Shown one piece after another: positions 35,089 through 48,072 of a stretch of DNA of 64,000 bases. The position numbers and the translations under genes are program-made. Where the stretch lies: contig NW_026931568.1 of the NCBI RefSeq assembly GCF_032062105.1, positions 310,001 through 374,000 on the forward strand. Direction: 5' to 3'. Positions within the stretch are counted from its first letter, which is position 1, and each line of letters begins with the position of its first letter. The notes below the pieces were generated by a model, which was not told where the DNA came from, searched no databases, and saw only the letters and a list, made by a program, of their open reading frames with translations. This DNA is from Saccostrea cucullata. Taxonomy: Eukaryota.

Positions 35089-38000
35089 AAAAAAACAACA
35101 AACACAACCCCTTTTTTGTACAGTAATGCACACTTATAGCGAAAATCCTTACAATGAATTGATTCTCACAGGAAAGTGTTTTTCATTTCCCATGACTTTC
35201 AATTATTTTGTACACTTATTGGATGTATCAATTTGATTTACGCTTATAACGAAGCAAAATTGTCCATCCCTTGCATGTCGTTATAAGCGTGTTTTACTTA
35301 ATGTAGATTTTGCGAAGAGTAGGTGTTATCCAAAAGTGACTGAAACAATATGAAGTTTTAATTATTTCAATAAACTTCAAAATTTAAAGACAATATTTTT
35401 TGTAACAGATCCAGTAGGAAGCAATATTTGTTAAATTCTTGGCAAACACTATATGTTAAAAATATGATATAAATTTTGTTACATATATAGTTTTGTATAT
35501 CCTATTAATTAATGCATGCTTTTGCACTTATATGCCTTTGCATGCATAATTATTCATATGAATAATGTTATATTTGTAAACAAGAAATAATGTTACAATA
35601 AAAAAATCTTATTTTTCTTTTTAGATCTTTTTATTTGAATACTTTATAAAAATGTTTTACCACCAAAATCCCTTTTTGTAATAGGTGATTTTCCCCCAAA
35701 ACTAAAAATGCTTTTAACATAATACATGTACATGTACATGTATATGTTTATTTTTAACCTAGGTGGCCTTAAACTCGATGTTTATATATATTGACTTATT
35801 TACAAAATCAGTATATCCTTGTGAACTTGAAATAAAAGATCTGATACATGTACATCAGAGTCTAATATCTATTTAATCTTTGGATATTTAATTAGAAAAA
35901 GTTGACAGTGGGTACTTAACATCAAAACTTTGTGATAAGACGATCTTTAAAAAGATGTTTGGTTTCCCTTTCCCGACCGACTGGCTAAAAATGACCCGAC
36001 TCAACTTTTTTTAAAGAGGGATTTTTGTCTGGTTTCTGACTAGAAGAAATATTCAAATATTTGCTTATTTGTCTTATATATTCCAATGTGAGAGTTTTAA
36101 AAGGTCGTTTTTTTTTCCTTCATCATAATTGCACAACTTTAGAAATGGTAAACTGAGTTTGAAATCTAGTAGGGACTGCTAGTATATTTTTGGCGGAATG
36201 GCGGCGCATGAAAATATCTTCTTTATTGCTTCTCAAATTAAAGTATTATAGAACAATGAACTTATTTATAATTTTTACACAATCAAAGTCACGAGAGGGC
36301 AAGCAAAATTATTTTAAAGATGGCTTAAACGCGATGTCGATTTTATCATATTTTTTGTTATCGTAAATTACCCTTACTTAAAAAGCAATTAATTTCTTTT
36401 TCCTAATTGTTTTGATACGCAAGAGTGTGCTATACGAATGAGCAATTCCTCAAAAGAAGCAAGCTAGCCATTAGCAAAACAGTTGATGACACAAGAATAT
36501 CAACAGACTAGATTAAAGTGATCACTTCGCAAGTTTTTATGGTAAATACAATGATCATATCGGCAAATACCATCAAACCTTATAAAGGTCGAATGACTTT
36601 TTCGTTCTTATTGTCAGGCAATTATTTATACGAGGGGTACACACTGCATATGAAAACCACAATTCAGATTAGAATAATTCAGTACACACATAGCCATACA
36701 CAAGTTTATAAATAGCATATGCTGAATAAAGTTTCTCTCCTTGTTTGTGATCACAATGTGAAAATGACGCACTATTTAGGTCACTGTGACGAAAAATGGT
36801 TGTCTCAGTCGAACTCGTTCAACAAACGACTGTACAATTTATTGCATATCTTAGAAATCCCTCTACAGTATCATATAATAATTTGTAGACAGTTTATTGA
36901 GATAAACTAGTTCCTATAAATTCAATTAATGATTGGATTAATCGTTTTAGTGAAGGAATGCTGATGGTTAAAAATGTATTTATTGCCCAGTGAAAGCAAG
37001 TTTGAAAAGATATGTATTTTTAATCATGCAATTTGGTATCAAAGACCTCCAATTAGGACTTTGAAAAATAGTTGAATATTTGAACAATGATATAAGTATT
37101 AAATACCTAAGATATCGTTTACTTTAGATTTTAAACATATTAGATATGCAAAATCCACCTTGAAAAAATGAAGATTTGTGTTTAAATGGTCGCCATGCTT
37201 ATTTTTGGAAAGGATATTCTTATCAACCCATTCTGTTGCCGAGATATGATCATTTCTGACAAATGAACTGTTCTTGTCATAAAAATTAACTCACATGGTC
37301 AGAAAAATCTGTCATATTAATGACAATATACGTGATTCGCGCATGCGCAGAACGGTGGTTGATGTGCATTAAAATCGGAGAGGAAATTAAAATATAATCA
37401 ACATTAAAACCAAATATTGTTTCTTGTATGGAAGTTATTCAATTAGTTTGACCATTGTCTACAGATCGTTTTTAATCAAAAGTCGGGTGTCAAATGACTT
37501 ATATTTCTTTTTTTGTGACATCATGGCAAAAACGTGGAAAAAATGAAGGTGACGTAATGGATATGGTATTTGGGCGATCACTAATTGTACAATACGGTAT
37601 GTCATATTAATGACAATTACAGTAGCGTAGCTTAAATGAAATTAAAAAAAAAACTTAATATTCCTTGACCTTGAAATCTATTTTCAAAATCAAATGACAT
37701 ATTTTTTTTTATCTAGAGCATACCTTAAAAGTTAACAGTTTAAAAAGAAGTACAACTCTACTTGCTGATTTAATTTGCTGATTAGAGTATTTGTGTAAGA
37801 GAGCATAAATACATGTACTCAGACAGACTTTTTATTCCCCACATAACAAAAAGTTTCACGTGCTTTACTATAATATATCATTTGATAACAAATTTAAAAT
37901 TTCTGATTATAAAAACCATAGCTTTTTCTATACAAAAATCTTACGAAGCTCATTTTCGTCAGAAATTACAACAAAGTTGCAAGAAAGATGTACATGTAAT

Positions 38001-38606
38001 GAACTTTTGGTTTTTTATTGTTATTCTAACAGAGATTATATGAAATACTCAAAGACTGTGAGAGGTTAACTCATATCTCTTTGTTGGTCAAATGGAGTAA
38101 AGCAGTTAATATTGTACGAGTCACAGTACAAAAGCCGCTCGTGTGCAATAATATGTAGAGAAGAAACAAATCCTCTGTGATTAAAAATAAATTCTTCTAG
38201 AGTATAAAAAATTGGAAAATCAAATGCTTAAAAGCATGAGCGGAAAGAAATTCTAGATAAAATAAAGCGTATTTGCTGTGAATAAGTGCAAAATTAATGA
38301 AAATATAAGCTATAAATAATTCTCAGGGGCAATATAAACAAACATATAAACCAGGCTTTAAGGCAACTGATTCTACATGGAAAAAGTTTCTAAACACAAA
38401 ATAAAAAGTAGGACGACAAATAAGGCCAACGAAACACATGAAACAGTAGTCTAAAATAAAATAAAATGCTTAGTGGTAATCATGGCTAGGATTTTGCATA
38501 ATCATCCATAATGTTACTAATTTACAAAAGCTTGGCATTGCATTATATTTCTTCCACAAAAAAGCTTCAGTATAAATGAAAACAATTTCAAAAAATCTTC
38601 TAGTAA

Positions 38607-41600
38607 TTAATGAAATGGAGTGGTATGTGTTTCTTTACAATGACATAATTTGTTTATACACTGCCATTCCGTATAACACAAATTGATGTGTCGTCGACAG
38701 TCCCCGGGTGTTACACATCCTAGAGAAAGAGAAAAATTAAGAATGATATATTTATCATAGTTATTATCTAAGTGTATAAACATTGACCTTTACATTTTAA
38801 ATCATGCTGCTTTGTAAAAACTAAAATGATTATGTTTAGGTTTATGTCCGAGTACCCTATCATTCTCAACACCAGTGATTTCAGGAATGGAGGTGGTTCG
38901 AATTTTTGCCAGATGAATTGTTTGTAATATATACATAAAAACCGCATGATATTACATCTGCATTCACCAACAAAAATCAAGCAGTCAAACAAAAGAATAA
39001 TATCATACTAGTAAGTGGATTTGACAAATATTGTCGTTAAAGGGATAAAAAATTTGTTTTTCAAACTAAGCGTTGAATACGTAACAACAGCTCATAAATG
39101 TTGAAAACTTACTGGCAGGTTCTGTAGTGGTTGGAATGGTCGTGGTCGTTGGTGGTGCTGGTGTACTAATGAGTTGATCTACATTAAATGTATGTAGATA
39201 AAATTAAACAAAGTACAAATGTAAACATGCATTTAAGAAATAAACAACAATGTTAAGAAGTTCTCTGGGAAATGAACTTTTAGTTGGTCACGTGATCAAA
39301 TCCTGTGAAGCCCGAAGGGCTTCTCAGTAGATTTGATCACGTACCAACTAAAAGTTCATTTTCCAGTGAACTTTTTAACATTGTTGTTTCATACTTATAT
39401 TTACATTTGAAACGAAAACATTTTGAGTTAAATTGTATTTATTACACGAACGGGCCAACGAACTGCTATGTAACGACGCGCAATAACCTAGAAGTTGTTT
39501 GGTCAAATCGTGTTGTGATCCGGTCGCGCTATGACCTCTGACCCCCAAATGAAATTCACACAGAATTGAACGTATTTTCTCTTCAATAAGTTCATCTAAG
39601 AAAGATATTTGCAAATGTAAATATTAGTGCTTAATCTACTTTAAAATCACTAATTTACGTGGCTGGTTAATTTTCGTTGTTTTCGAGGTATGGAGAACCC
39701 AACGAATTCATGACCACCACTAAATGTAAAATTTTGCATGCATTACTACTTAAGTTAACATTCTCCAACAACAAAATCAAATTCCCCCAAGCCAATATTT
39801 TTTATCGAACCTGGAAAATTTAACCCCACAAAATATGTGATTTTACAGTATTAAATGACATTTATTTATGTTTGAACTTAACCTGGATTAATGCCTCCAA
39901 AGTCTCCACAGGTTGGAAAGTTGTCTGGAACCTTTGGTTGGTTTTCGAAAGATTCATTCAGAAGAACAGCAATTCCATCTGCTACGAGTGGAAGCATTTG
40001 GTAAGAGATGGCCCACATCCCTGGGTTATCAACCTTGATTCGTGCTATGACGTAACCACCATACGGGAGTGTAATTGTGTCCTTCAGAGGAGGATCTGCG
40101 AGATTCAAACCGGTGTCATTTCCGTTGAACCAATCTGGATCGCTCCATGTAGCACCATTACAGTTTTCATCTTCAGTAGTGTTCCCTCCACAGTTGATGT
40201 CGGTATTCTCCGAAATATACTCTCCAGTAGTTTCATTGTAGTTTGCATATCCTACCTTTAAAACCTCGAAAGAATGGCCATGCATATGAATTTGAACATC
40301 CCATCCCTTTTGTTTTCCCATGTTCAAGAAAACAAAGTTAATCGTGCCGTTATAGTTTGCATCAATTATATTGACACATGTACATTCATCGTTGTTCTTA
40401 CATTCTTCTGTGGAACACAAACTTTTAACGTGTTTGTAATGGGATTTTGCTGAGATAGGGGGTAATAAGTATTTCATGGGGCCAGAAACGGCAAAATTTA
40501 AGAAATATTCGTGTAGAGAACCTTCTGAAGAAGGTGCATTGGATATGAATGCCGTCGTTGAATCTATAGTTAAACATTGAAGTTCTGGCTCCATGGGAAA
40601 AGACTTGACTGGACAATTTAAAATGGCACATTGTTCTGTCGGTGTGCACGGATTCCTCGTAGAAGATAAAGACACAAACATTTCATCTGCTCCGGCATAG
40701 TGCAGCACTGCTTCAGCAGGTATCGAGTTGATGACATTTTGTGCCACTCCGCGAATTTTGAAATTACCAATATCTGCCTTGGCTTCCAGTATAAAGTCAA
40801 ATCTCTCTCCGGGGTTAACTATTACAGATTCTACATCAACTGGTTTGATTAAACGAGCATCAGAAGACACAACAGTCAATGTGTGGTTGTCCACAGAAAC
40901 TCTGTAAGAGTACATAGAAGCTGCATTTATAACTCGAAATCTGTAGAGTTCGCCTTGATCAACATCAAATACCTGTATTGGTGCTTCATTATGCTTTCCC
41001 GTATCAGGGTTATAGTATCTTCCTCTGCCATTGATCAGAGAAGAATGTGCATTCCAGATAGAATCAAACGTTAAAATTTTACTTGATTTGAGATTTTCCC
41101 CTACCTCAGAAGAGAGAAATTCTCGGTCTGCATTAAAGTCATGATTCCAGTCCTGCAGCTGTAGAATGAATTCTCCTGAAACATTCTGCAGATGTGAAGG
41201 AGGATTTCGTTCTCGCACTACTAATGCCCCGTACAACCCTTTTCCCCTTTGTAAACCTGATTGAGAACGGTACCAGTAAGTGCCGCCCTGACCGACGTTG
41301 AAAGTATAAGTAAAAGATTGACCAGGATCAATGGGACATTGCGACGCATAACTAGCTCCATCCATGTTTGGCGTGCCTCTTTGTTCTATCCCATGCCAGT
41401 GGATGAATACTGTTTCTGACATGAGGTTATTTTTGACGTGGACAACAAGAATCTGATCCTCATAAGCTATGATTGACGGACCAGGTAAAGAGCCATTTGC
41501 TACAACAACCACTATCTGCTTCTCAAATCCATCTGCTGTGATAACTTCGCTAATGTTAACAGGCACAGGTAAAATGGGGTCTGCGGAGTATTTATAAAGA

Positions 41601-41773
41601 GAACCATTACTGGGGTAAACAGCTTTTTCCTTCTCATGAAACATGGTCAATTCTTCGGTAATTACCAAAGAGGTTTCGCAGATGTTTGCATTCTCATCGC
41701 ATTCAAATGAGGAGACGACATGCAGCAGGGATAATGCAAGAAGAAAAATCACTGCCGTCTTTGCCATCTGCAT
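38607..41773 (-). CDS. Secreted laccase-like multicopper-oxidase homologue lacking most Cu ligands, predicted to continue into a Thr/Pro linker exon and a cvSI-type Cys domain exon
   Basis: Large exon 41773(or 41767)-39883 encodes a signal peptide (MAKTAVIFLLALSLLHVVSS) and three cupredoxin domains. Donor CAG|GTTAAG at 39883. Phase-1 exon 39178-39113 (DQLISTPAPPTTTTIPTTTEPA). Phase-1 exon 38719-38607 (RCVTPGDCRRHINLCYTEWQCINKLCHCKETHTTPFH*). The laccase homology is very strong, but the splice to the 3' exons is inferred. Confidence 0.8.
39269..39362. repeat. Palindromic hairpin repeat with GCCCGAAGGGC apex
   Basis: AAATGAACTTTTAGTTGGT...GATCAAATC pairs with GATTTGATC...ACCAACTAAAAGTTCATTT. 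Confidence 0.8.
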
Positions 41774-42268
41774 GAAATCAAGAAACATTAAGAAGAGGGG
41801 AAAATCCCACCACGACCTTGACAAACTTTAAATTTATTTTAAAAAAAACAAGAATAGAAATAATATATTACTTTCAACACAAACTGCATACATAAATGGA
41901 AAGTTTTATTTTTATCTGTCGAAATAAAATAAATAACAACTGACTGATTTATTGTACGTTGTTTGACGCCCCTTTGAAATTTTTCCACCCATATAGGGAC
42001 GTCACCAAATACCGGAAAAGGACTTTTTCTCGGCATTCATTGCCAGTTTGCAGTGAGGGTTCTTTATCGTACCAATGCCTATCGTGACATGGGGACCGAG
42101 TTTTAAAGGTCTCATGCGAATGACCCGCAACTTTCACTTCAAAGTGCAGAACACTTGGTGAAGGAACAGTTGATACCTATTTTTTTTTTAAAAATAGACT
42201 TAGGTCAGTCGTGGCATTGATTCGAAGACACAACCTTTTGATCATGAAAACTTCGAACAGGTGGAAAA

Positions 42269-42810
42269 GAACTACGCACGCTAATTCTAGATTCCCGCCT
42301 ACATTTTATAACCGTTTAATTCAATATTGAGGAAAATTTGGCCATAAAATAATTTTTCAATACAAAGAACAGTTCAATGGTAATTAATTAATTATTTTGA
42401 TACCAGTGCTAAATACCAGAATATCCCGAATTCCAACCTTTGAAAAAAGGGGGGTAGACGATAGTTTCCACTGAAATCAAGCTATAAATCATACCATATT
42501 TTGAGATAGGATTTGATGTGAATAAATGTTTCATAAATCTTTTTTAAGGTATTATGGATTTAAAATTATTCATATATATTACTAAAATACAATGTTTCAT
42601 TTGTAAAGCACTTCAAAATAGCTGGAAAAATAAGCATTTTTGTCGTTTTACCAAAGTTTTAGAATTATCTCTCGTTGTTTTTCCAAATAAGTAATTTTTT
42701 ATGAAAATCCATATAAATATCAATGTAAATACTAAAAAATCATTTGAATACTTAACTTTTGAAAATTGACTTGGAGGTAGGCGGGAGAACAATACTATCG
42801 TTCGTACTTC
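42269..42810. mobile_element. MITE copy 1 (GAACTACG...CCCGCCTAC termini)
   Basis: Imperfect TIRs. Homologous in reverse orientation to 46641-47364. Confidence 0.7.
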
Positions 42811-43206
42811 TTTGAAATAACGCCTTAGTACTTTGTCGGTGTTTGACTATTTGGTGCCGTTGCTTAATTAGAAATATATGACTTAAGAAAACGTTGTCAA
42901 TGCATAGGTTTAAATGCAAGAGTGATTTATACCATAGCATACTAGCTAAAATTGGTCCATACATTTCAAAGAAACATGCAATGCACTAATGTACTTTGCA
43001 TATGAAGGCGGATAGCAGTAATGAATAAGACAAGACTTTATACATGTAATTAGACCAGGCGCATTAGTGATGATTTGTCAATGACTGACTTGAAAAAAAA
43101 AAATTTTCAATGTTTTCTTTCATGAAATAAAAGACCTACCTTTAAAAACCTATACCAATTTTTCAAGAGAAGGTTCAAAATGTAAAGACGTACAAACCAG
43201 TTGGGG

Positions 43207-43216
43207 TGTTTATATA
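43207..43216 (-). promoter_or_regulatory. Candidate TATA box for the laccase-like gene (upstream non-coding exon ending at ~43140)
   Basis: TATATAAA on the minus strand, followed by an AAG|GTAGGT donor at 43140 and an AAG acceptor at 41826. Confidence 0.3.
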
Positions 43217-44077
43217 TTACGCAAGATCCCTGTAATCAGACACCATTGCAATGTTGCTAAGTTTTTTGTTCCTATAAATACAATTTTTATCAAAAAACTC
43301 CATGTCAAGCTTTTTTTGTTGACATAGACAATTTTTGATGGCAAAATTAATGCATCAACGTTTTACTATGACTTCCTCTTAAACTTAATAAAAGGACATA
43401 AGCTTGAAAAGTGGTCACGGACAGAAATTTTCATCAATTCATTTTGACTAAATAATTTTGTGATCAAAATTACAGTTCTCAAAAAAAGATGCTCTTAATG
43501 CAATTTTAATTTTGAGCTATTTCATGAAATTGATATGAATCTAACCTCTTTAAACTACTGCATGCCTCTTAATAGTTTGTTGTCAGAAAGGAATGCATAT
43601 TTTAGTTGCCTTTCTTTCAACTAAGCCTCCATTGTTTTAGGGAATATTGTCTGAACGGATTTTAATACTTAGTTGTTCCTTTGAGAATTTAGCCTATGAG
43701 TGAAGCTTGGCTCACCACAGCAAATATTTTAACAGAAGATTGTATCATTTAATTATTACTTAAATAAGAAAGATTTTTATATATTTGAAAATTCCCTTTC
43801 TGAGAAATGATGAGTACCCCAGATGTTCTTCGTTTCATTTTTATTATGCTTTATTTGCATTGCTACTTAAAGACTTGTAAGCCTGTATGCACTTTAATTT
43901 ATATCAATTCATGTCGTCTTCAATAACTTCTATGATTTTTTGCTTGCAACTAGCTTTGAAGATTTAAATAGAAAACAAAGCAAATTGTTACATTTTATTA
44001 TTTATTTTTCATACAGTGAATTTCTTCGCGACTAAAATAAATACTTGAAAAAATGACTTTTTTACAGATGTGTGGAT

Positions 44078-45166
44078 TTATTTACAACGGCATTGTTCCT
44101 GAATGCATTCCCATTCTGTATAACATACGCCAGTGTGTCGTCTGCAGTCCCCGGGGGAAAGACACCCTAAAAAAGAGGAAACAGTGAGCAAGCATATTAA
44201 TATTAAAAGTCCTCAGAGATAAAAAAAAAATAGTATTACGCATATGTTTATCTAAAGTTATAGCAAACGATAATTTATCGGCTGTAATATACCCGTCGAT
44301 ATTGTAAATCATCTTTTGTTTTACAATAGAAGTAATGAATTTGATAATGACGTCATTTATTGAATTATACTCACTGTATACGTCAGTTATTGGAGTACAT
44401 GTACACAGGTTGTTCTGGCAGGTGAGGGTAGTGTGATGAATACACCCCACATCAATACATTGGTACTTGCTGACACAAGCTTCCCCGGCAATCAGGCCTA
44501 AACATAAATAATTATAAGTAGAAAATAATAATAAAAAAAATTAAAATGTATTTTATTTCATTAAAAAATATATTCGATTGTTTATAAACCTGTCACATAT
44601 AAGCCATAAAGATTAATTATATAAAAATCAATCACTGAACGTATAAGTTTATTGGAATTGACGTACTGGGTAAACAAATACAAAAAGTAATATTTTAGTT
44701 CTATTTTCAAATGAAGGATTAATAGATCAATTCATGGATTTTTATATTAAACCTCAGTTTTTAAATCATACCAACATTTATACAGCTAAAAGCGAAGTAC
44801 CAGTTTTAACAAAATGAACCAAAGAATTTGCAAAAAATTCTTATCGTACCAGCCCTTGCTACAATTTCACCGGCAGCAGACTTGTGACTTTATTTGTACT
44901 GCCGATCACTTCTATGATTTCGTACTATTAGTTTTGACTTTACAAAGATTCAAACTCACAACTTTCCTAAGCTTTGTCGATGAGATTTTCAAAGAACTCA
45001 AACATTTGTTTATTTAAGGTCATTGAAAGCTTGGAATTGAGCTACTGAAGAGGATCTTTTGAAATTGTCTTTGCTGATATTCATATAAAAAAATCATAAA
45101 AATCAATAAAGATGAATTTTACTTACCAAGGAATGAGAGTATGAGAGCAGCTGTTAAAATCTTCAT
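44078..45166 (-). CDS. Secreted 12-Cys serine protease inhibitor, cvSI-2-like (MEROPS I84), copy 1
   Basis: Exons 45166-45127, 44497-44375, 44166-44078: MKILTAALILSFLGLIAGEACVSKYQCIDVGCIHHTTLTCQNNLCTCTPITDVYRCLSPGDCRRHTGVCYTEWECIQEQCRCK*. Confidence 0.85.
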
Positions 45167-45465: not shown

Positions 45466-48072
45466 ATGACGAAACTGCATCTAAGTGTCTTTGTATTTGC
45501 TGTGCTTTTTGTTGGTAACGTATATGTAGCTTACTCTTATAATATTATCATTCTCTTAAATAAATTGCCACTTCTAAATGGAAGTTCAATTTAATGACTA
45601 ATATTGTCACTTCTGAATGAATGCATTATTTAATGACAGTTAACTAAATAAAAATTGAATTTGCATTTATAAGACTGAAAATAAAAGAAACGTTAATGTT
45701 TCAGGATTTCTGAAGTCTGAGGATTGTACGGTAAGCAGCGGCTGTATAGACACGGTGTGTAACCACCAAACCAACTTAGAATGTGTTCACGGCATCTGTA
45801 CTTGTTCACCACCACCCTACGACCAACGTAAGTAAATCCTACCACAAAGTGAATTCTAGAATATAAGTAAATGATGTAACAAATTACATTTATGTAATTG
45901 TAGTTGAATTCTACTTTAAACGGGAGTAAAGTAAAGAAAAACACATGAGTTTTACATCGTAAGTAACATGTTTTTATGGTAATACCTAAATATATTCTAT
46001 GGCATCAATACCAGTAAGAATTCTGCGATATACAAATGTGATTTCTGTGAGTCCATTCTGTAAAACCTCATTAAAAAATTATTCCAATTTATTACTTAAA
46101 AATTCTCAATTAGTTTCAATATAAATTCTAAATCATTCAAAACCGAAGGTATCTGTTGAAATCCAATGATCAAAACTAAAATGATATCGATTTGGATACT
46201 AGGCAATCACTTTCTTTTCAGTTTTGTTCACATTGCGTAAATGTAATTCGTTTTAAAGCATTTTAAAGACGGAGATTAAACTTTTAACTGAATTAAGATA
46301 CCTATACGTTCTGTTTAATGATAAATGCTTACATTAAGAGTAAAGGTCTTCCATAACCACCTCAACAAAAGAATTTTCAAGATAGTCAGACTTCGCACTT
46401 ACCCGTTTGTTGCAAAAGTAGGTCGATCTAACCAGGTATACCTTAAAGAATTCCAAAATAACTGCGGATTTTTGTACACATTTTCTATTTTTACTAAACA
46501 GGTGTCTTATTATGTCTAAATAGGGATCTTAATGTTAGGTAACACACTGTGAAGAAATAATTCGACATACTCATCAAATTTTCTCAAGTCTGTTTAGTCT
46601 GGTCTGTTTGGTGAAGATTGACTTAAGAAATTGCGAGAAAGAACTACGAACGATAGTATTGTTCTCCCGCCTACCTCTAAGTCAATTCTCAAAAGTTAAC
46701 ATATTCGAATGATTTTCAAATTTTTTTTATAGATATTTATATGAATTTTCAATAAACGTTACTTATTTGGGATACCAAAGAGAGATAACTCTATAATTTT
46801 GTTAAACTTGTGTTTTTCACTATAGAAATCAACAGAAAACGGAAAATATTTTTAAAACATCTTTCCCCCCCGTGAAACAAAAATTCCTTTTTCCAGGTAA
46901 TATGGACTGTCATTTTACAAATTTATGCCAAAGCTTTTTGTGTTTCACGGGGGGGGGGGGGGGGAACATATGTTTATAGACAAAAAACGAAAGAAATGCT
47001 GATTTTTCACCAATTTTAAAGCTATTTACAACTAAATAATTGTATTTTATTAATTTATATATGTTTTATTTATTTGCGTAAAACATAAGAAAAGATATGA
47101 GATACATTTTATCATATTTAAGACTATTTCAAAATATGGTGATTCTTGAAAGTTCGATTTCACTAGAAAATATCGTCTACCCCCCTTATTTCAAGAGCTG
47201 GAATTAATGATAATTTACTATCTAGCACTGGAATTAAAATGATTAATCAATTACCATAGAACGTTCTTTGTATTAAACAAAGATTTAATGGCCAAATTGC
47301 CATTAATATTGAATTTAATGGGTGCAAAAAGTAGGCGGGAATCAAGAGTTAGAGTTCGTAGTTCATTGAGTCAATGACCGCTTAAGATTTGACTGATTAT
47401 TTAAACTCCATGACACATTTACATGTAACGTTTGTAGCAATTTTCAAATACATTTTATATTTCATTTTGAATGTTTCCAATTGTTGTCATTAGTAGCAGC
47501 TACAGTTCTGATCTTTTGATATGTTAATGAAATGCTATCGTCTACAAATCTGATGAATATTTCTTACTTTCAAATCTCATATATTGACTTTGTAATTGAA
47601 TTGTGATTAATTTTTTATGCTTCCAAAGGCGTTCTTCAATTTATATTCTTCAACAATCTCATGACAGTCATTTGAATAAATCATGGGGATATTCATCAAT
47701 AAAATTTGATCTGCTGACATAAAATCAAAATTAAAAAAAATCAATCAAATTATCTCTAGCTGTAATGCATATCTTATAAAACACTCTTAAAAAATTTCAT
47801 AAACTATTGTGACGGATAAATACTACTCATTGAAAAAAGTATTTCAAAACAGTACACATCGATAATACTAGTAAACAATTGTATCACAAGTGTTGATTGT
47901 AGTATCCTTGCCACCCCTTTAAGAAAAATGATTTTTCAGTAGTTTTAAATCATATTTAATATATCATCTTTGAATCATAGGATGTTTGGAGAAAGGTGAT
48001 TGTGATAGACATATCTATGACTGCCCCACAGACTGGAGATGCATCAATCAAAAATGTAGATGTGGCAATTAA
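45466..48072 (+). CDS. Secreted 12-Cys serine protease inhibitor, cvSI-2-like (MEROPS I84), copy 2
   Basis: Exons 45466-45514, 45705-45827, 47981-48072: MTKLHLSVFVFAVLFVGFLKSEDCTVSSGCIDTVCNHQTNLECVHGICTCSPPPYDQRCLEKGDCDRHIYDCPTDWRCINQKCRCGN*. Same phase-1 introns and 123-nt exon 2 as copy 1. Confidence 0.85.
46641..47364. mobile_element. MITE copy 2, in intron 2 of cvSI copy 2
   Basis: GAACTACGAACGATAGTATTGTTCTCCCGCCTAC ... GTAGGCGGGAATC...CGTAGTTC. Confidence 0.7.

Follow-up and report, generated by a model that had tools for sequence, protein, structure and literature searches.

The window analyzed here, a 64,000-nt stretch of a Saccostrea cucullata contig that is free of N, carries on its minus strand a four-exon gene for a protein of 687 aa, in which a three-cupredoxin laccase body is followed by a 23-residue Thr/Pro linker and by one copy of the second module of the I84 protease inhibitors. 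Two I84 genes lie next to it (Table 1). Exon 2 contains Cu-oxidase_3 (PF07732), Cu-oxidase (PF00394) and Cu-oxidase_2 (PF07731), all above the curated Pfam cut-offs, and it ends in a phase-1 donor, G/GTTAAG, the apparent stop TAA being intronic. That overlap of stop and donor, with two clean phase-1 exons downstream, was pointed out in a preliminary description of this DNA and is confirmed in the sequence; of the mucin-like stalk proposed there, the Thr/Pro composition holds, but 23 residues are short for such a stalk. There are ten N-x-S/T sites and, by hydropathy, no second hydrophobic stretch beyond the N-terminus, and the protein is probably secreted and glycosylated. RefSeq already has the gene, as XP_062570960.1 (LOC134232985), identical to our model over all 687 residues, so it is not new as a gene model; publications on it or on its orthologs were not found in the literature searched, which includes few subscription journals. 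This record was the reference row of the local alignments. Otherwise the gene was searched and folded exon by exon or through the records of other species, and the joined three-exon model served in local tblastn runs, with the window and two loci as targets, and in the RefSeq comparison.

Table 1. Features of the fusion gene and of the neighboring I84 genes in the window
Feature	Position	Strand	Basis or remark
TATA-like element TATATAAA of the fusion gene	43209..43216	-	sequence; function inferred
Non-coding first exon, 5' end approximate	43140..43185	-	RNA joint; donor G/GTAGGT at 43140/43139
Exon 2, signal-peptide-like N-terminus and three cupredoxin domains	39883..41767 (1885 nt)	-	Pfam, hydropathy, RNA depth and joint
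MITE-like high-copy element of about 400 bp, in the intron after exon 2, outside the protein	39230..39626		copy search
Exon 3, Thr/Pro linker, 66 nt, phase 1 on both sides	39113..39178	-	RNA joints on either side
Exon 4, coding part: second I84 module with 6 Cys, a short His/Thr/Pro end after it	38607..38719	-	Cys spacing, identity, RNA joint
Neighboring I84 (cvSI-2-like) gene, 83 aa	exons 45166-45127, 44497-44375, 44166-44078	-	signal exon and two 6-Cys exons, two phase-1 introns
Second I84 gene, 87 aa	exons 45466-45514, 45705-45827, 47981-48072	+	exons match RefSeq XP_062570972.1, "serine protease inhibitor Cvsi-2-like"

The splicing of the gene is supported by four RNA runs from three studies, aligned over 38560-44520; one of these (X1) was only guessed to be RNA, yet its contigs are spliced. 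Both predicted splices are present, 39883>39178 (joint 39178/39883, skipping 704 nt, CT..AC) in runs X22, X24 and X1 and 39113>38719 (joint 38718/39112, skipping 393 nt, CT..AC) in all four, so transcripts continue past the laccase exon. Raw reads are thin, 2 and 3 for the laccase-linker joint and 1 and 2 for the linker-tail joint, and since read similarity to the window is about 95-97%, the RNA comes from related animals. At the 5' end, a joint at 41769/43160, seen in run X3 only, connects the non-coding first exon to an acceptor just before the ATG; the 15 letters inside it match the end of that exon, and Magallana transcripts likewise have a separate 5' UTR exon. Further upstream, 222 bp around the TATA-like element are 88% identical with S. 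echinata. A laccase-only isoform produced by intron retention had also been suggested. Records of this kind exist (650-652 aa, with the stop just past the donor), but all three that were mapped come from contigs that also retain the 5' UTR intron and the pre-linker intron, and are thus unspliced. The read-through ending past the laccase donor is different in each species, and Magallana has an uninterrupted 702-codon frame, with no introns, on 14 Logan contigs. Intronic polyadenylation at the AATAAA at 39866 is possible. One X1 contig, 41070-42338, is unspliced from the laccase exon to about 570 bp inside the 5' UTR intron and could represent a retained intron, a second start site or DNA.

The window also contains several repeats. 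The MITE-like element has inverted arms of 58 nt (39231-39288 and 39343-39400), and the copy search returned 3728 candidates, of which 40 were scored and 39 are other copies at 89-93%. Low word sharing between the runs and the window is not due to this intronic element alone, since alignment showed real exon coverage too. A repeat pair in opposite orientation, with blocks 72-95% complementary, occupies 42266-42813 in the laccase 5' UTR intron and 46638-47367 in intron 2 of the plus-strand I84 gene, and short-period tandem repeats at 8003-8404 and 56378-56791 give rise to long spurious open frames.

The two I84 genes are regular members of their family, each with a signal peptide exon, two 6-Cys exons, two phase-1 introns and the published Cys pattern. 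In the same-strand gene (44078..45166) the joint of exons 2 and 3 is found in RNA, and the gene has its own AATAAA at 44006/43999. The two are head to head, with start codons at 45166 (-) and 45466 (+), 300 bp apart, and the retention of this pair in S. echinata and C. virginica suggests a shared promoter. The fusion departs from the family in that it has 6 of the 12 Cys of the two-module arrangement, all in the second module, and in that it is a 687-aa protein from four exons rather than a secreted peptide of some 70 residues that stands alone and is encoded by three. The pattern of the first module, encoded by I84 exon 2, was found neither in the tail nor anywhere within 36000-44000, and the tail exon is indeed the orphan that it had been taken for. 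In PMC9198434, I84 proteins are described as two 6-Cys modules on separate exons, which probably differ in function.

The tails of S. cucullata, S. echinata and O. edulis have the second-module spacing, C-x5-7-C-x3-6-C-x5-8-C-x4-C-x-C, on a phase-1 exon of their own, while those of C. virginica and M. gigas carry insertions of 2-3 residues and do not match the published spacing exactly. All six Cys are retained in the tails, and the second-module Trp of I84 is kept in 4 of the 5 species; D-C-x-R-H is invariant across 15 tails and I84 second modules, and the tail, the two neighboring genes and a Pinctada I84 protein have this motif and their six-Cys spacing in common. The acceptor lies where it does in I84 exon 3, two bases ahead of the first Cys codon. 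Identity with exon 3 of the same-strand gene (44166-44078) is 18/28 (64%), the value given in the preliminary description, and with exon 3 of the plus-strand gene (47981-48072) it is 15/27 (56%). Folded alone, the tail is predicted to form a compact helix and hairpin, with a mean pLDDT of 78 and about 82 over residues 1-30. Structure searches turned up no I84 structure, nothing of significance emerged from PDB sequence and fold searches (best E 0.18, best Z 2.2), an Atlas search gave only weak Nodulin_late-like rows, and the tail region as the sole query for homologs returned no candidates.

Cu-oxidase proteins with cvSI-like C-termini do occur in other oysters. The same succession of laccase, Thr/Pro linker and 6-Cys tail is found in S. 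echinata (XP_061184675.1), O. edulis (XP_056010293.1), C. virginica (XP_022328453) and M. gigas (XP_011455858.2). Since four oyster genera share this tail and RefSeq contains the exact model, the fusion is not the novelty that was first claimed. The laccase bodies of the five proteins form one clade (SH-aLRT 100, stem 0.45), in which Ostrea and Saccostrea stand against Crassostrea and Magallana; the tree is a quick version, with SH-aLRT only, a midpoint root and all rows kept. These oyster genera split many tens of millions of years ago. The structure and the age of the gene, taken together, are in our judgment close to certain. Among the 120 best laccase matches, an I84-type tail is absent from every non-oyster protein. 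A search with the O. edulis linker and tail region among long proteins returned only the two known clusters, and in a profile search of 1.84 billion representatives the sole long protein was the S. echinata fusion; the fusion is likely restricted to oysters, both of these searches being weak for 30 residues.

The preliminary description explained the gene by an intronless laccase copy that had landed in the cvSI cluster and captured a duplicated terminal exon, and it named as the alternative a laccase nested in a cvSI intron, with the small exons spliced from cvSI exon 2. The phases are compatible with both, and the genes adjoin on one strand, but either origin now appears extremely improbable. 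Nesting fails on the RNA, in which the laccase exon joins the linker and cvSI exon 2 joins its own exon 3, and a joint from 44375 to 39178 is absent among the joints listed. As for the landed copy, the catalytic region is in one open frame at no fewer than 14 other laccase-like loci of the genome, and since a single catalytic exon is normal for the laccases of this genome, missing introns are no sign of a retrocopy. The fusion also has a 5' UTR exon and intron of its own. S. echinata, C. virginica and a Magallana-like contig each have an I84 gene upstream on the strand of the fusion, but O. edulis has the same fusion and no I84 gene was found within 10 kb upstream of it. A recent event is further contradicted by the synonymous sites, which between tail and neighbor exon are near saturation (dS > 1.3).

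A better account of the slot into which the tail fits comes from sister paralogs on contigs C7654 and C3030, where a 63-nt phase 1-1 Ser/Thr/Pro exon separates the large exon from an ShK-like or C-type lectin module. Their models are those of RefSeq, and the ShK Pfam match was obtained with the M. gigas rather than the S. cucullata paralog. In these genes the phase-1 donor falls at the same codon as in the fusion, 12 codons past the last FPxC motif. Because donor codon and phase 1-1 linker exon are shared, we read the linker and module slot of the fusion as inherited from sister laccases and the last exon alone as I84-derived. That the tail goes back to a duplicated last exon from the adjacent I84 subfamily, the part of the earlier account that stands, is supported by the 64% identity, the phase and the Cys spacing; the same-strand neighbor is a likelier source than the plus-strand gene (64% vs 56%), although 28 residues, with synonymous sites near saturation, are insufficient as proof of source. 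The course of events would then be that, before the four genera split, a copy from an oyster laccase subfamily with the layout large exon, phase-1 linker exon, phase-1 module exon was placed immediately downstream of an I84 gene and gained, as its module, a duplicated copy of that gene's phase-1 last exon; the copper ligands would have decayed afterwards, lineage by lineage. Two further records touch on these laccases. S. echinata XP_061195268.1 is annotated with a short read-through end at the same donor and may thus have tail exons missing from its annotation. A scallop laccase with a fibrinogen domain was considered as a tailed relative and not counted, since that domain is N-terminal.

Compared with S. 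echinata, the laccase exon has dN 0.068 and dS 0.344 (dN/dS 0.19), the linker dN 0.071 and dS 0.618 (0.11; Fisher p 0.0018) and the tail dN 0.047 and dS 0.449 (0.10; Fisher p 0.0025). By these ratios, purifying selection at dN/dS 0.1-0.2 acts on all three coding exons, the two small ones included, for which the measurement had been proposed. The linker exon is 67-86% identical among the five species. The fusion body changes faster than ligand-intact paralog pairs (0.19 vs 0.08 and 0.12, in pairs that may not be strict orthologs), and the tail has diverged faster between genera than the neighbor's exon 3 (43-66% vs 71-82% identity; for S. cucullata and C. virginica, 43% vs 82%). The faster body and the loss of catalytic ligands might be taken as marks of a decaying pseudogene with a chance tail, but with frames open in five species, each coding exon under constraint and the RNA spliced, there is hardly any chance that this is so.

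The laccase was described as copper-deficient, and it is. Of the 11 ligand positions (123, 125, 167, 169, 491, 494, 496, 588, 589, 590 and 594), Saccostrea keeps 4, namely H123, H125, H494 and H496, which are both type-2 His and two type-3 His. In S. cucullata the His, Cys and His of the type-1 site are lost (V491, Y589, L594, with I599 at the axial position), and the trinuclear site is left with 4 of 8 His, the others being replaced by R167, Q169, S588 and Q590. Without the type-1 Cys and the His-Cys-His path, a multicopper oxidase has no laccase activity. With both absent here, electron transfer from substrate to oxygen by the S. cucullata body is presumably impossible. In Magallana the four that remain are a different set (123, 167, 491 and 496), while O. 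edulis and C. virginica each keep 10 of 11, having lost 590 and 594, respectively; H123 and H496 are common to all five species. Since no ligand is missing from all five species, a full set of 11 in the ancestor of the clade is most likely, with heavy loss at least twice. The O. edulis and C. virginica orthologs have diverged by 36% and still have 10 ligands each, so a metal site may still matter in these two. Of the 120 best laccase matches, 108 have all 11 ligands; the deficient ones of full length number 11 and occupy the first 11 places, all of them orthologs of the fusion gene or unspliced forms thereof; one further deficient match is truncated. Two other laccase-like genes of S. cucullata (C5627 and C16580) have 6 of 11 ligands and lack the type-1 Cys, a further and separate loss; the former falls outside the fusion clade on a long branch, and the latter is absent from the tree.

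Three known systems resemble parts of the fusion. The first are the oyster three-domain laccases with ShK-like or C-type lectin tails (XP_011415244.4, XP_022297812.2, XP_062607270.1 and XP_062597127.1), its sister clade, which share the one-exon cupredoxins, the phase-1 donor, a Ser/Thr/Pro linker exon of 63-66 nt and a small Cys-rich module; unlike the fusion, they have all 11 copper ligands, and the fusion differs in its I84 module and longer stem. The I84 inhibitors cvSI-1, cvSI-2 and scSI agree with the tail in the second module's exon boundary, phase and Cys spacing, but they are stand-alone 8 kDa peptides, whereas the fusion bears one module on a 650-residue protein and inhibition by it is putative. 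The insect MCORP and the plant SKU5 have, like the Saccostrea fusion, lost the type-1 Cys and most type-3 His and kept both type-2 His, a combination that the Ostrea, Crassostrea and Magallana orthologs do not have. In contrast to the fusion, a probably secreted protein with an I84 tail and incomplete, species-specific ligand loss, MCORP and SKU5 are membrane-anchored. MCORP, which is found only in insects, has no oxidase activity and holds little copper, yet is essential (PMC4203857). The nesting of the fusion clade among ligand-intact oyster laccases argues for an origin apart from MCORP and SKU5, neither of which is in the tree.

Our main reading, to which we assign a probability of roughly 0.55, is that the fusion in Saccostrea would act as a secreted non-oxidase scaffold that displays the tail as a binding module. 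A folded, glycosylated extracellular body would hold the disulfide-rich tail out on its short linker as a binding tag, in parallel with the ShK-like and lectin tails of the sister laccases, and the likeliest ligand would be a protein of microbial origin or from host mucus, a serine protease or another. The role as a decoy or in the shell that the preliminary description put forward is conjectural. A less probable proposal than the scaffold is that the tail functions as a subtilisin-type inhibitor, either tethered or released at the linker, with the body mainly as its carrier. The retained Cys, D-C-x-R-H and Trp, the low dN/dS and the compact predicted fold of the tail are all compatible with inhibition, and I84 proteins act on subtilisin-family proteases, as stated in the accessible part of PMC9198434, which leaves their reactive site unplaced. 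That unplaced site, the lack of an I84 structure, the divergence of the tail ahead of the neighbor's exon 3 and the insertions that break the published spacing in Crassostrea and Magallana all count against it, and 630 residues at dN/dS 0.19 exceed what a mere carrier needs.

It is likewise rather unlikely that the body matters chiefly for a reduced metal site, handling copper or zinc or acting as a weak oxidase in some lineages, with the tail merely as an anchor. Saccostrea does keep both HxH motifs where domains 1 and 3 meet, both type-2 His among them, and the two His common to all five species fit as well; in C. angulata a laccase transcript, not necessarily that of the fusion gene, rises with copper burden (PMC4673431). 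But Magallana, with its other four ligands, has lost the second type-2 His, and in an insect MCORP that has both type-2 His, copper amounted to about one atom per 17 molecules (PMC4203857). A bolder extension of the scaffold reading, which we hold to be doubtful, is that capture of the I84 exon freed the body from catalysis, that oysters keep successive independent stages of this change (10, 10, 4 and, in a different set, again 4 of the 11 ligands), and that a single module would suffice to bind or inhibit pathogen proteases. If true, an I84 module would for the first time have been shown as part of a multidomain protein, and the half responsible for inhibition in this family would be located.

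In any case, the fusion combines known kinds of change, the exon shuffling of a module-swapped laccase and ligand loss as in MCORP and SKU5, and is not a new kind of system. Its value lies elsewhere. The oyster "laccase-4" labels in immune and copper transcriptomes may cover proteins that are not oxidases, and the orthologs with 10, 10, 4 and 4 ligands are material for following the change from enzyme to pseudo-enzyme. For the I84 family, the tail is a natural single-module construct, which makes the question of the roles of the two I84 halves directly testable.
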